DNA of 64,000 bases from Calcarisporiella thermophila CBS 279.70 (lineage: Eukaryota > Fungi > Calcarisporiellomycota), in contig NW_027192214.1 of the NCBI RefSeq assembly GCF_041956535.1, positions 221,687 to 285,686 of the forward strand, in the 5' to 3' direction. Both the position numbers and the translations under genes were made by a program. The notes below the pieces were generated by a model. It searched no databases. It saw nothing but the letters and a program-made list of their open reading frames with translations, and was not told the origin of the DNA. The first letter of the stretch is position 1. The number at the start of each line of letters is the position of its first letter. Of the stretch, positions 43,844-51,747 are shown in pieces.

Positions 43844-46800
43844 TTAAAATCTTCGAGTATTTGGGTGGTGGTAATAGCTACTTCCATCTTCATATCCACC
43901 TCTTTCATTTCGAGGAGGATACTGTTGATGCTGGTATTGCTGTCGTGCCATTAAAGCCGCATAAGCTCGATCATGCTCTTGAGGAGAGGTCTCATACCCG
44001 TAATCCATTGCTGCTTGTGCGCTTGCATTAGACCCGTATTGATGAGACATATCTGAATATCCATCCGTAGTGTACTGGCGAACAGGGAGGTTATCATAAT
44101 TCCGCATCGTTGATTGTGAATGATTGTGGTGGTTGAAGTATTCGCTAGTACCGCTACGTTCCACCAATCGCACATCGTCACGGTCCTCATAATAATAGGA
44201 TATTGCATCCGACGAAGGATTGATTGGGTAAGAAGACATCTCATAAGCCTCGACACCTTGCTGTGGGTTCATAGGGAGTGGTGGTCCCCTCCTTGGCTCG
44301 AATTCGTTTCTATACAAATCGTTTGCGGGCACCTGTCTTCCCATAGAATACACGCTAGGAGCGACTGATTTGCCCTCGTTCCATTCAGAATAATCATCGT
44401 CATCCTTGTAATATCCATTTATTCCGTCTCGCGAATCGTCGTAGGCTAATTCACTCGTATCCACCGTCTGAAATCGCATGGTTTGGGAGCCATTCTTCAA
44501 AAGGGTAAGACGACGTGTGGTAGGAAGACGCGATATACCGGTTTGCCGTTTCTCGGTTTTCTCGTCCAGTCTACCAGAATATACCTGGCTTAGCATATGA
44601 TTCACGTTTGAGTGAACCATTGGGGTCGGCAGATCTGTTGAAAGAGCTGGGTGCCCAAAGCGTCTATAGAGCTTGTCCTTGTTCTTGGTAGACCCCATAT
44701 CCATGTGCGCGCCAGAGCCGTCCATCAAATCTCCTGAGCCACTATAGTATTTGCATTTCGAATCAAACGTCCGCCAGCATATAAGCTTTAGCAAAATCGT
44801 CAGAATCGGCAATGGGGCCAACACTAGCGACTGGAGTGAGGCACCCTTTAGATTCATGAGTCCGATCATTACTAGTTGAAAGAGGATAATGGACATAAGA
44901 AAGCGGTTGAAAATAACACGCCACATTGCACCGCCAGTTTCAATCTTTGTCTGACAGACATAGAGGACTTGATATCGTTGAACTATATAGTTGAGAGAAA
45001 AATATGCGACACAAAAGGGGAGAACTAGCGGAGCGATTACCTAAAAAAAAATGAGCTATTGAGTCAATCGAACCACTTCAGATATTTCCTACTATTTCTT
45101 TACCGAGTACAAGAGGCCAATAGTCATGTAGAATAGACTCAAATTGTAATACATAGGGTAGTCAAAATACAGAGGACGTGTAGCTTCACGCAATTCTCGA
45201 GGTGTCGGATTAGTTAACCGCTTTTTAAGCCAGATAATCACCAAGGCGAACACTTGCATCAAGTCAAGCACGACAGAGAGACCTCTAAGCGATATGTAGT
45301 TAATCCAGAATGAAGACACCTTGGTAAGCGACTTAGCAGTATCGTCAAGTATCTTCGACTCGCGAAATATATCAATCAACGTTCCGGCCTGGAATTCATT
45401 ATTATTGACCTTATCCCGGATGGTAGCGTATATATCAAGAAATGTCTGAAACAGTGTGACGTAGATGAGGTTGCTGACGATGAAAAACGTGTAAAGTTTA
45501 CGCAGTACGTCGTAATTGCAGGAAGTTTTGGTCAGTGCTCCTGTAAGCAACAAGCATGAAGTCATCTTTCCATTTTACCGAATTGTCTTCATCCATACCT
45601 TGCTGTCTCGAAAGGAACCGTAAAAACAGCGGAAGTAAAAGCAAAAAGATGGCCATAAGCAGTGGAGCAAGCGATGCCTCGATCACACTCTCAATGAACG
45701 GGTTCTTCTTGAAGAAAGGTTTGAGCGCCGGAATCCTGTCCTTGATTACCTTGACATGAGCCAAGGCCGAGATTGCCAGCATTGGAAATATCCAAACGAA
45801 GCAGAACGCAATGAAGAAAATGTTGCCGATCCAGCGCTTTGTTCGACGTGCGTGGGGGTTGAGTGAAACATTCTTCCATATGATATCCTTTGGGGTCGGC
45901 GCGAGGAAGAACTGGGGAGGATTTGCCGAGTTCAGTTTAATGGGGAGGCTACTCTCAAGACGTTTTGCGACTGCATGTGCTTGTGGCATCGATGCAAATG
46001 ACACAAAACCATAGTTAGTCATTTTATTCTCGGAGATACTATCGCGCGCTGTTTCGATCTCGCGCTCTAACTCTTGCATTTCTTTTGTGTAGTGATCAAT
46101 CCCGTCCACTTTGACTCCTCCGCAACAGCGCCCGTTCACCTTGCAGGTTGGCCGCTTCTTGGCAAATTTGTTGGGGCCTAAAGGCATATGCAAGAAAAGC
46201 ATAAATAAAAAAATGACGCTTGAAACCACTCGATCTTACATCCTACCTTTAAGGTATTTTGCGAGCTGCGATTCCAAGTTTCGCACAGCTTCTTCATGCT
46301 TTTCTATCAGCTCCGGAAGTTTACCAACTTTCCGTCCCATATAGGCCTGCTGCACGGGATAGGGTGGGTTCATCCGGCGCACAAGCTCGGCGAGATCACT
46401 ATCCGACTTCAAATGTGGCACATTGAGCACCATGACGGTATGGCTGTGAATAGATCTGCGGTATTCCTCAGATTCGAAATATTTCCGACGCAAGGCGACG
46501 ACACTTTTGTATTGCGAGAAAAGCATATAATAAATGAGGGTGGAAAATATCCAGGTCACCCCCACGTGTGCCCAATACCATCTATCGTCATTGTCAAGAT
46601 CGGCAACGCTGAGGAGACGAATCTCGCCACCTGGCGCATCGCCGTCGTTGGACCGCAGAGTCCCGACGATATTGACGGGTATGATAACCAAAATGCCCAC
46701 AACCGTCATGTAGAAAAACATGCGTAAGAGAAGGCGAACAAACTGGATAAACACAAGTGCGTCGTATCCGATTTTTTCAAGCAGCTGTTCGTCAGTGAGC

Positions 46801-47172
46801 CTGGATAAAAGCAATTAACCCAGAGTTCAGCTTTGAATTTTGTGCTGGATGGTGAATCGTTAATACCTGATTATAGCTAGCCAGTCCAATAAGCCTTGTC
46901 CAAGTTTTGGCGGTCGCTTACTCTCAGCTGAATATTTGATGGTTCGAGCGTATACATTGCTATTGTGGGGCCGCAGAATGGAGAAGGCAAAGGCCACTCC
47001 AATTGTAATCGCAACGTTTATCCCCAGCTGGGTGAGCATGCCTAAGAATAGAAGAAATCCATCAGGACCAATTCAGAAGGGTATGCGCACTATCCATCTT
47101 GCAGGTTTTACCGGTAAGGGTAACCTTTGCATCGGCTTTAACTTGATTCTTGAAGTCAAATACATCGCTCAT
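43844..47172 (-). CDS. OSCA/TMEM63 (Csc1/Rsn1-like) calcium-permeable stress-gated channel
   Basis: FSILRPHNSNVYAR, IGYDALVFIQF, APTPKDIIWKN, TPRELRE...FDYPMYY, ETGGAMWR; multiple TM helices and a long disordered C-tail. Confidence 0.9.
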
Positions 47173-47566: not shown

Positions 47567-48605
47567 TTAACAAGTGGTGCCTACATATTCAACATCGACC
47601 TCCTCCTCATCGTCGCTGGCGCTTTCCTCGTCACCATCGTCGTCGTCATCCTCCTCCTCCTCCTCCTCCTGCTCCCAAGTATCGTCGCCATCCTCTCCTA
47701 CGTCTCCGCCTAAATTGCTCGACCGCATATTCACCCTGCGGAAGAGTTGAATAGAAGGGGAAAGTAAGCTTTTGGCTCCAATACGAGAATGCACGATTTG
47801 CTCTACTTACTTGTCAGAGTCCCCTTGTAGACTCAACTTGGAAAGCTTTATTCGCTGATACTCGTTCTAAAGTCGGATTGAACTCTGTGAGTAGAACATT
47901 GGAAATTCTGACCAAAAGATGAGGTAATCATACCTCGATTTGCGACCAGTTCTCCTCCTGTAATTTCATAGACTCGGCTAGGGAAATTGGCTGTAATCGG
48001 GCACTTTTGTAGTATCTGGACTATAAACCTCAGGAGAGGTTAGAGGAAGAAATAGAGGTTGAAAGGAAAGCAGATGTGAAAGCTACCTCGTTTCTCTGGG
48101 AGTGGGATATTGAACGCTCCTCTCTTTCAATATGTGATTTGAGCTTGTGATAGGCTTGTAACTTTTCCTGTGGAAGTGGGTGTTCAGTGGTCGAGCTGGG
48201 GGTTCTCCCAATATCCAAGTTGCCCAGCACGCCGCCAACCTCATTAACGTGATCCGTGCGACCTAAAAGCACTTCAATGCGTTCATTTGCCTGACGGACA
48301 CGTTCGCCGTTGTCTGGGAGTTGGGCGAGGAGTGATCTGCAAATAAGAAATGTGAGAATACACAATAGCGTGGAGTAGAGATCCAAAAATAATTACGGAT
48401 TCTGTAAAAGAGTGCGATGTTTATCGCGGAGCTCAAGTAGCTCGTCAATCGAGCACTTATTTAGATCCTTTATATCCGCGTGATTGAGGCCGGCGCCGAA
48501 GGCGTTGCGCTGCAATCTGTTGGGATGCGCCAAGCTAGAGTAATGGGCGGAAGATGATAAGCGACGCCGGAATGGTTCAGAACGTGATGAAGGTTGTGAA
48601 AACAT
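47567..48605 (-). CDS. POLR2M: Gdown1/POLR2M (GRINL1A)-like RNA polymerase II-associated factor, 5 exons, 256 aa
   Basis: Exons 48605-48397, 48336-48087, 48020-47934, 47866-47811 and 47735-47567 (771 nt, in frame, all introns GT-AG). Motifs DLNKCSIDELLELRDKHRTLLQNPSLLAQLPDNGERV, QPISLAESMKLQEE, KVNMRSSN and an acidic tail, collinear with animal Gdown1 as recalled. Confidence 0.75.
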
Positions 48606-49333
48606 CAGAATCGGCTGATTAGATTGTTAGAAGAACGGGGGGCGGATAACATATTCAGCATGCTCGCATTGCCCATTCGAGAAGAGCCGCTTTGAGAGAT
48701 TGGAATTCGGAGCACGCTGCCCTCAACACGTCCCCCACCGGATCGGATTCGAATTGCACTCTGCCCGACTAGGAAAGGCGAATAAGCGAAATTACGTGTA
48801 TAAATGGAAGGAGAAAAGCCATATGCCAAAACACAGCAAACTCTATCGAGCAGCGAGGCGATTAGCTCCTTCGAGAACGGCTGAAGCCACGCCGGCCGGC
48901 CGCAGCCTGCAAGTTAATCTAATCGCGGGCCGTCTCCCTATCAGTCCAGGGCGCCCGACAGCCCGCCGGTGAGCTGGGAATAGTCAGCGTGAAGTGGAGA
49001 CAGCGGGGGGGGGCGGATTGGAAGTCCGACACGCCCTGAGAGGTGAGCCGTGAAATGTTGCGCGCTTTTCTGCTGCTTTTGTTGAGGAATGTTTTCACAA
49101 GGGTGTGTGAGGAGAAATTTTTTCTATCCTTGATCGGCTTCTCTCGTGCAGATAGGGAGGACTCGCTTATTTGCTGTCACTTTTATCTTTTTATCTCTCG
49201 CAGCTTTCTTTTTTTTTTAGCACGCTTGCGCTTTTCCCAGCTTCTCTCCCATCTTTGCTTCCGACACCTATCCAAACGCGTTCCTCCCATCTAAGCACCA
49301 CATTAGCAATACCCTCCATCTCCTCTCGCAATC

Positions 49334-51747
49334 ATGGCTAGTCAACAGGCGCGTCTTGCTCACATCGTCGAGTCCATTAACCGTCCCCCCCGCTCCGTCG
49401 AATTCCCCAAGCGCGACGGCAAGCCCGTCTACACCTCCGAAATCTACGGGCAGAATGTCTTCTCGCTTAGCCTTATGGCTAAGATGCTGCCCAAGCCAAT
49501 CTACTCCTCGTTCCTTCGCCTTTCGCGCGGCAGCCATCAGCTGGATAAGCCCACCGCAGACGCTATTGCCCATGCCGTCCGGACCTGGGCAATGGACCAT
49601 GGAGCTACCCACTTCACTCATTGGTTCCAGCCTCAAACAGGCAGTACTGCAGAAAAGCACGACTCTTTCCTGAGCTTGAAGACGACATTCGGCCCGGGGA
49701 GCCAGGACGTGACCCCAATTGACACATTCTCCGGATCCCAACTGCTACAATCCGAGCCCGATGCTTCATCTTTCCCAAGCGGAGGTATGCGCTCTACCTT
49801 TGAGGCCCGTGGGTACACCGTCTGGGATACAAAGAGGTATTGGGATGTCAATTTAAATCCATTGTCTAAAATCAGCCGAGTTCATTGTTTATTTTTTTTT
49901 TTATGACAATGCCATAGCCCCATGTTCCTTAGAGCCGGTCCCAATGGAACCATGATCCTCTACATTCCCTCTGTTTATATCTCTTACAACGGTGAGGCTC
50001 TCGACGAGAAAACCGTGCTTTTGCGCGCCTCAGAGTCTTTGTCCAAAGCCGCCTGTGAGCTGATCAAACTTATTGAACCCGTCCCCGCTGGTAGGCCAGG
50101 CCATTTGTTTTCCCCGGCCGCTTTGTTGTATTGATTTGCTTTGTTTTCATAGGTTCTCCGCCACGTGTCAACCACGTTTACACAACACTCGGAACGGAAC
50201 AAGAATTCTTCCTTGTCGACCGATCGCTCTATGCCCTCCGCCCCGACCTCAAGATTTGCGGCCGCACCCTCGTTGGAAACCTCCCTCCGCGTCACCAGCA
50301 GCTTGAGGATCATTACTTCGGCAAAATGCCCAGTCGAGTCATTGCTGCACTCAGCGAGACCGAGCTCGAACTTTTGAAACTCGGCGTCCCCATCAAGACC
50401 CGCCATAACGAGGTAGCTCCTGGGCAGTTCGAAATGGCGCCTATCTTCGAGGAGGCCAACATCGCCGTCGACCACAACTTGTTGTCAATGGACATCATCC
50501 ACAAGGTGGCCCACAGGCACAAGCTCAAGGCTTTGTTTCACGAAAAGCCTTTCCAGGGTGTGAATGGCTCGGGCAAGCACTGCAACTGGTCAATGAGCAC
50601 CGACCACGGAGAAAACCTGCTCGATCCCACCGTGAAGCCCGAAACCAACTACCGTTTCCTATTGTTCTTGGTAGCCGTCCTCGAGGCAGTCCACCAGCAT
50701 GGTGGCCTCCTGCGTGCGGGTATTTCATCCTCATCAAACGAGCACCGTCTCGGTGCCAACGAGGCTCCTCCTGGTATCGTCTCCGCATTCCTTGGGGAAC
50801 ACTTGACCGAGGTCCTGGACTCTATCGAGCAAAACCGCCCGCTGAAGAACTTCTCTCAGCCCGAGTACCAGAGCATTAAGCTGGGTGGCACCGTTCTCGA
50901 TTTGAAAGTGGCCGCACTGCCCACCATTGCGCGTGATTTGACCGACCGTAACCGCACCTCTCCGTTTGCTTTCACCGGCAACAAGTTTGAATTCCGTGCC
51001 GTCGGCTCAAAACAGTCTCCCTCTTTCCCCGTGACGCTTCTCACCGCAGCAGTGGCCTCTGCAATTCAATCCGTCACCAGAGATTTGATTCAACAGAAGG
51101 GAGACAAGCCCTATCCCACTGACGAAGATAAGCTTGCAGTCATCCGCAAATACATCGCGCGCACAAAACCCATCCGCTTTGAGGGCGATAACTACTCCGA
51201 GGCATGGCGCAAGGAAGCTGCTGCCCGCGGCCTTCCGGACATCAAAAATGGTGTGGAAGCGTTTGCGCAGTTATTGCACCCAGACAACGCAGGAATGTTA
51301 AAGAAGATGGGCGTGTTCTCAGACTCGGAATTGCACTCTCGCTACCACATTCTGATGGAACGTTATGTCAAAGACTGGGTTGTGGAAGCCAATACCCTCC
51401 GAACTATGATACTAACTCAGGTGCTGCCGGCCGGATTCGAATACCGCCGATCCCTAGCCGAGGGTGCGAAACTATTAAAGGAGGTCGAGGTGGAGGCCAA
51501 GCCCGAGTTAGATTTGCTCAAGAAGTTGACTCCACTACTCAATGGCTTGCAAGCTTCAGTTGAGAAATTAACTGAAGCAGTGCATCACGCTGAGGCCGTG
51601 GAAGATCTTGCTGAGCAGGGTAAGCGTGCCCATGGCCTATGGGATTTGATGAACGAGGTACGGAAATATGCGGATAGCCTCGAGGAATTGGTTGCGGATA
51701 AGAACTGGCCATATCCACGATATGCTGAGTTGTTGAGTTCTTTGTAA
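49334..51747 (+). CDS. Glutamine synthetase type III, 3 exons
   Basis: GSIII-specific motifs [74 protein letters not shown]; introns near 49837-49917 and 50090-50152. Confidence 0.95.

Follow-up and report, generated by a model that had tools for sequence, protein, structure and literature searches.

The gene described here lies on the minus strand of a 64,000-nucleotide stretch (the window) of contig NW_027192214.1 of Calcarisporiella thermophila CBS 279.70, at positions 48605-47567, and encodes a protein of 256 amino acids. We conclude that it is, with a probability of roughly 93%, an orthologue of animal Gdown1/POLR2M, present in a single copy and inherited by vertical descent. Gdown1 has been called metazoan-specific or metazoan-restricted in papers from 2022 and 2026 (PMC8887472, PMC13443923), and C. 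thermophila is an early-branching fungus with a phylum of its own (NCBI taxonomy). A fungal Gdown1/POLR2M identity had been proposed in a first-pass annotation made from the letters alone. It is supported here at both ends of the protein by a profile built from animal proteins only and by two intron positions shared with animal genes, and the reciprocal search which that annotation had asked for led to this locus alone in the genome.

Homology with animal Gdown1

Human Gdown1 binds RNA polymerase II (Pol II) by three anchors, namely the Rpb10-binding region (RBR, residues 19-73, on Rpb10/Rpb3), the external-binding region (EBR, 224-255) and the protrusion-binding block (PBR, 290-334), the latter two on Rpb2 (PMC13443923). 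The animal-only profile is an alignment of 29 diverse animal proteins, many of them named GRINL1A or POLR2M. Against the PDB it recovered human GDOWN1 (28jc_M) with an E value of 2.4e-48, and the human Gdown1 segments that the first-pass annotation had cited were verified in the same chain. The human protein was compared as this chain alone, and the intron comparison used animal loci other than the human gene.

In the 28 Mb genome, this gene was the sole locus matched by the animal-only profile (exon 2, E 8.6e-4). Among the 2545 stop-to-stop pieces of the window, ranks 1 to 4 were taken by the pieces with exons 2, 3, 1 and 5, and these four are colinear with the profile (exon 1 at positions 11-36, exon 2 at 37-110, exon 3 at 214-238 and exon 5 at 271-296). 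Aligned singly, exon 1 yielded 9.8 bits (profile positions 11-36), exon 2 26.5 bits (39-106) and exon 3 13 bits (214-237), and for each of them none of 2000 shuffles was as good. The match of exon 5 (272-297) was found to be compositional, and exon 4 received no support from the animal-only profile. Because homologues had first been collected with a pattern on exon 2, outside of which exons 1 and 3 lie, region-only profiles were run as a control. Each ranked its target first among the window pieces, with E values of 0.21 for exon 1 (helix 1) and 2.6e-4 for exon 3 (PBR). In the reverse direction, GCOM2 (PF15328) was the only Pfam family matched by exon 2 alone (model positions 15-62, E 0.032). 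The protein further shows the order RBR, linker, PBR and acidic end, falls within 250-370 aa and has no catalytic domain.

Two of the four intron positions are common to animal Gdown1 genes, one within the RBR and the other within the protrusion-binding helix. The acceptor of intron 1 precedes the L of LPDxG by one base plus five codons. It recurs at exactly this position and in the same phase in 21 genomic loci of animal type, which fall into about 12 sequence types with 13-67% identity. The GT donor of intron 3 is found at the same codon, 14 after the E of an ES pair, in all 14 animal-type loci with a protrusion block, representing 6 distinct types. In further loci the profile matches break at both shared positions, the intron 3 site corresponding to profile position 239. 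Loci are called animal-type because they resemble named fish, cockroach, bee and mollusc proteins, from which their taxa were inferred. For introns 2 and 4 no sharing with animal loci was seen, the locus check having been made for intron 2.

Homologues were collected with a degenerate DNA pattern built on the helix-LPDxG-helix part of exon 2, which gave one match in this genome and 54 in metagenomes, whereas in bacterial genomes it matched 15 times by chance. Some 30 of the metagenome matches are real family members, and the intronless ones exceed the Pfam cut-off for GCOM2. A profile made from the metagenome members matched at least 588 proteins; those listed are mostly animal, many of them named GRINL1A or POLR2M. 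Its match to the public model of the gene, VTP21DRAFT_5893, was not counted as it is circular, the profile having contained exon 1 and exon 2 pieces. In the ESM Atlas, a GCOM2 cluster was the third match for a single-exon query. A Pfam family scan across the genome gave no GCOM2 candidate, and pairwise PDB searches with single exons recovered no animal protein. Among 1.84 billion representative proteins, a single-exon search returned just VTP21DRAFT_5893 and four chance matches to long repeat proteins. Both a word-indexed search with exon 2 and a tblastn scan of metagenomes with single exons were too weak.

Gene model and conserved blocks

The five exons measure 209, 250, 87, 56 and 169 nt and sum to 771 nt, i.e. 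256 codons plus stop; every exon is stop-free, phases are consistent, and all four introns (60, 66, 67 and 75 nt) are bounded by GT-AG. The five-exon structure and 256-aa frame of the first-pass annotation were thus reproduced by recomputation, and the public model agrees. This record (NCBI VTP21DRAFT_5893, our P0001; Calcarisporiella thermophila, 256 aa, 'uncharacterized') contains every exon translation at the expected position and carries no precomputed Pfam entry. The G + C content is 0.33-0.44 in introns and 0.43-0.55 in exons, and the codons split by splicing are CC/A and AA/G. The longest stop-free piece has 120 codons, in accordance with the earlier remark that the open reading frame track missed the gene because no fragment exceeds about 120 aa. 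We regard the five-exon gene as confirmed, with junctions that rest on sequence, the public model and homology.

Exon 1 (48397..48605) contains the start codon, 45 unconserved residues and helix 1 of the RBR (residues 46-69). Intron 1 (48337..48396; phase 2) would keep the frame but has a stop inside. Exon 2 (48087..48336) encodes helix 2, the LPDNG turn (48306..48320, residues 76-80) and helix 3 of the RBR, followed by the linker. Intron 2 (48021..48086; phase 0) precedes exon 3 (47934..48020), which holds the protrusion-binding block with the start of helix 5, equivalent to human 302-313. After intron 3 (47867..47933; phase 0), exon 4 (47811..47866) presumably continues helix 5. Intron 4 (47736..47810; phase 2) is followed by exon 5 (47567..47735) with an NMR stretch, the acidic tail (D or E at 27 of 55 residues) and the stop. 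Exon 4 is the weakest part of the gene model, other in-frame acceptors being present (e.g. 47854). It is needed because an acidic tail in frame requires an exon length of 2 modulo 3; it has a perfect GTAAGT donor and the same ends in the public model.

The three-helix RBR (human 19-73) is formed by exons 1 and 2. The region aligns without gaps to human residues 14-51 at an offset of 32, with E23, L24, L34, L35, N37, L44, P45, D46 and G48 identical, R30 replaced by K and K50 by R. Genome-wide, LPDNG alone matches the motif pattern; the exact form LPDKG or LPDRG is lacking, and since LPDNG replaces LPDKG the gene is classed as a variant. In the predicted structure, the exon-2 part consists of a short helix, a turn and a long helix, like the model of an animal RBR; a Foldseek search with the exon-2 model gave no match. 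The start of PBR helix 5 (human 290-334) is present in exon 3, where S305, E308, S309, L312 and Q313 are identical to human and L304 is replaced by I; the second half, in exon 4, is unsupported. In both modules, conservation is concentrated at the hydrophobic interface positions. The NMR stretch of exon 5 resembles human 337-340, but taken alone it is not significant (58 of 1000 shuffles). In the human protein, NES2 spans 332-340 and the cytoplasmic anchor (CAS) 352-357, with the arginines R352/R354/R357 (PMC9728996).

Compared to human GDOWN1/POLR2M/GRINL1A (368 aa; PDB 28jc_M, 9t5h; PF15328), the fungal protein shares the gapless RBR, the start of the PBR helix, the acidic end and the order of these parts. 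It differs by its length of 256 aa, LPDNG, a much shorter linker, an undetected EBR and the lack of clear CAS arginines or YR. Invertebrate Gdown1 proteins (250-330 aa; insects, molluscs, tunicates) are similar in size and layout; as in the fungal protein, position 40 is occupied by L or F, and variants with I, L or P occur in the PBR. Unlike it, all keep K47, and most keep an EBR with an FKPN-like end as well as YR before the acidic tail. TTF2/Lodestar and plant ULP1D and CHR24 have a three-helix module with an LPD-x-G turn in common with the fungal protein (PMC4007455; the plant match is by shape alone). These are large enzymes, whereas in the fungal protein a catalytic domain is missing and the C-terminal block is of the Gdown1 type.

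Proposed role and alternative explanations

In two structures published in 2026, Gdown1 occupies cytoplasmic Pol II alongside RPAP2 and GPN1-GPN3. The human PBR is in steric conflict with TFIIF-beta, TFIIB and NELF-A, and Mediator is no direct competitor (PMC13486763, PMC13443923). Most of the Gdown1 in human cells is found in the cytoplasm, and transcription shows little direct response to its acute depletion (PMC8887472). Genes for RPAP2, three GPN GTPases, Iwr1, Rpb10 and TFIIF-beta are present in the C. thermophila genome. Based on the human structures, the small depletion effect and the presence of these partner genes, we consider it probable that fungal Gdown1 is an escort of new cytoplasmic Pol II which shields it from TFIIF and TFIIB. 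As an argument for this, the partner genes are not discriminating, being found in eukaryotes generally. The N-terminal three-helix module would dock on Rpb10/Rpb3, and the exon-3 helix would lie on the Rpb2 protrusion, where it would block TFIIF-beta and TFIIB. Fungal Gdown1 would then ride Pol II through cytoplasmic assembly and import with RPAP2 and GPN1-GPN3, and Pol II would be kept inert until the escort is displaced in the nucleus. We infer Pol II binding, competition with TFIIF and the cytoplasmic location from animal structures. Having two anchors instead of three and an asparagine for the motif lysine, fungal Gdown1 may bind Pol II less strongly than the animal proteins do.

Several observations weigh against this reading of the gene. 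The match of exon 2 to GCOM2 scores 14.9 bits, below the cut-off of 27, the first 14 positions of the model falling in exon 1. Within the RBR, R33 is changed to T, Q31 to H and K47 to N, and this K of LPDKG is invariant in 29 of 29 animal rows; the K-to-N change had been noticed in the first-pass annotation and is confirmed. In the PBR, L303 is replaced by P, which is also present in 2 of the 29 animals. With a profile of the EBR (human 224-255) no coherent match was obtained (114 of 1000 shuffles for the end of exon 2, at 2.6 bits), which had gone unnoticed in the first-pass annotation. Nor is there a clear counterpart of the YR motif that lies close to the cytoplasmic anchor of the human protein. 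No further named fungal homologue was found among the 120 matches listed, a list biased to animals and drawn from at most 8000 word-sharing candidates.

This last result would be expected if the gene had been acquired horizontally from an animal or were an assembly contamination, and genomic transfer would bring introns along. Such an origin is nevertheless very improbable: the gene sits on a 511 kb contig between fungal-type RSN1/OSCA and type III glutamine synthetase neighbours, its introns of 60-75 nt fit the 55-100 nt gaps in other genes of the genome, it has no close animal relative, and its other two introns are not animal. NELF-B and NELF-C/D, further factors lost from yeasts, are retained as well. 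The idea that the gene is another carrier of a mobile LPDKG module, either a cut-down TTF2 or a protein of the plant ULP1D/CHR24 kind, draws on the presence of the motif in TTF2 (PMC4007455) and on the three-helix shape matched by plant ULP1D and SNF2 proteins. A second carrier of an LPDxG module was not found genome-wide, where an intron-split copy could escape, so that a TTF2 with the module may be absent from this genome; this too would suit a module carrier. The best argument against TTF2 or any other such carrier is the position of intron 3 in a Gdown1-specific block: exon 3 matches the protrusion-binding helix of Gdown1 and ends at the animal Gdown1 intron site. Size, block order and acidic end also fit Gdown1, there is no helicase or protease domain, no exon matched a helicase family, and the module is followed by an acidic tail and stop instead of SNF2 helicase domains. 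We therefore regard the module-carrier explanation as largely refuted.

Yeast Pol II functions with Mediator and without Gdown1, which counts against the view that the same orthologue has its main job in the nucleus, as Pol II(G)-type control through a Mediator-relieved initiation block or by tuning of NELF-type pausing. A nuclear main job would be in line with the retained initiation-inhibiting PBR block and with NELF-B and NELF-C/D in the genome, given the clash of the human PBR with NELF-A (PMC13486763). In addition, without an evident counterpart of the animal cytoplasmic-anchor motif, a larger share of the protein could be nuclear. We nonetheless consider it unlikely, since the human protein is mostly cytoplasmic, transcription is little affected directly by its acute depletion (PMC8887472), and it faces no direct competition from Mediator (PMC13486763). 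The Pol II(G)-type, Mediator-dependent control inferred in the first-pass annotation stays hypothetical, and recent work places Gdown1 mainly in the cytoplasm, on complexes of Pol II assembly and import (PMC13486763, PMC13443923, PMC8887472). An eroding orthologue, one no longer binding Pol II tightly and either heading to the loss presumed for yeasts or left with a minor role, would explain the changed lysine in an otherwise invariant motif, the undetected EBR and the identity of 16-32% to animal pieces after intron 1. Erosion appears improbable given an intact frame, canonical splice sites and conserved interface positions in both modules.

Evolutionary range and genomic neighbourhood

The first-pass annotation had placed the origin of Gdown1 in the opisthokont ancestor. 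With an orthologue in a fungus, Gdown1 is at least as old as the common ancestor of animals and fungi, and this part of the claim stands; it is a minimum age, and Gdown1-like proteins of non-animal look hint that the origin may predate opisthokonts. In a literature search of incomplete coverage no paper describing a fungal or protist Gdown1 orthologue was found, and automated family databases may already list non-animal members. Early-branching fungi that keep 'animal' transcription factors have a precedent in NELF-B and NELF-C/D, which were once deemed animal but are widespread in eukaryotes and were lost in yeasts (bioRxiv 10.1101/2023.02.19.529146); Gdown1 or POLR2M are not mentioned in that survey. 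In the present genome, NELF-B (COBRA1; G000:C2:1359124-1359306) and NELF-C/D (TH1; G000:C1:930852-932956) are above the Pfam cut-offs.

We tentatively propose, at slightly less than even odds, that Gdown1 is an ancient escort in Pol II biogenesis which predates opisthokonts and had a minimum of two anchors, that animals added the third anchor and a cytoplasmic lock, and that yeasts lost the protein. If true, a thermophilic fungus with NELF subunits preserves a pre-animal set of Pol II control factors for structural and genetic work. The cellular role of Gdown1 is still argued, with assembly escort, mitotic or stress repressor and Mediator-dependence factor as candidates. The fungal orthologue shows the oldest parts of Gdown1, and it is a naturally occurring variant with two anchors and LPDNG, in a thermophile that already serves as a source of stable proteins. 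With Gdown1 older than animals, its original job becomes testable in a simple heat-loving microbe.

Among the leads for a wider range, P0008 (L072:1964-2443; listed with L015:3-467) is Gdown1-like, 159 aa long, above the GCOM2 cut-off and has an acidic end. Its contig is AT-rich and very compact, with 17-20 nt between genes, and probably belongs to a protist. Other intronless or non-animal-looking proteins with the LPDKG module are L028:946-2015 (P0006 cluster), L018:650-1132 (P0007) and L041:607-1053, the last of which adjoins a UVR-motif gene and may be algal. In the ESM Atlas, a 210-aa Euglenozoa cluster that resembles the module by features was among the best-scoring entries for exon 2 as well as for P0008, with scores under 0.9. 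Together with the shape matches to plant ULP1D SUMO proteases and CHR24-like SNF2 proteins, which suggest a mobile Rpb10-docking module, it is a lead only.

Within the window, a type III glutamine synthetase gene of at least two coding pieces (49334-51747, plus strand) is divergent from the Gdown1 gene across 728 nt. A CpG-rich promoter in this interval (48606-49333) was considered and rejected, as the observed/expected ratio is 1.01 compared to 0.95 for the window and 28% of equal windows score as high. Just downstream of the Gdown1 gene, on the same strand, lies a multi-exon gene for an RSN1/OSCA/TMEM63-type channel (43844-47039, minus strand).
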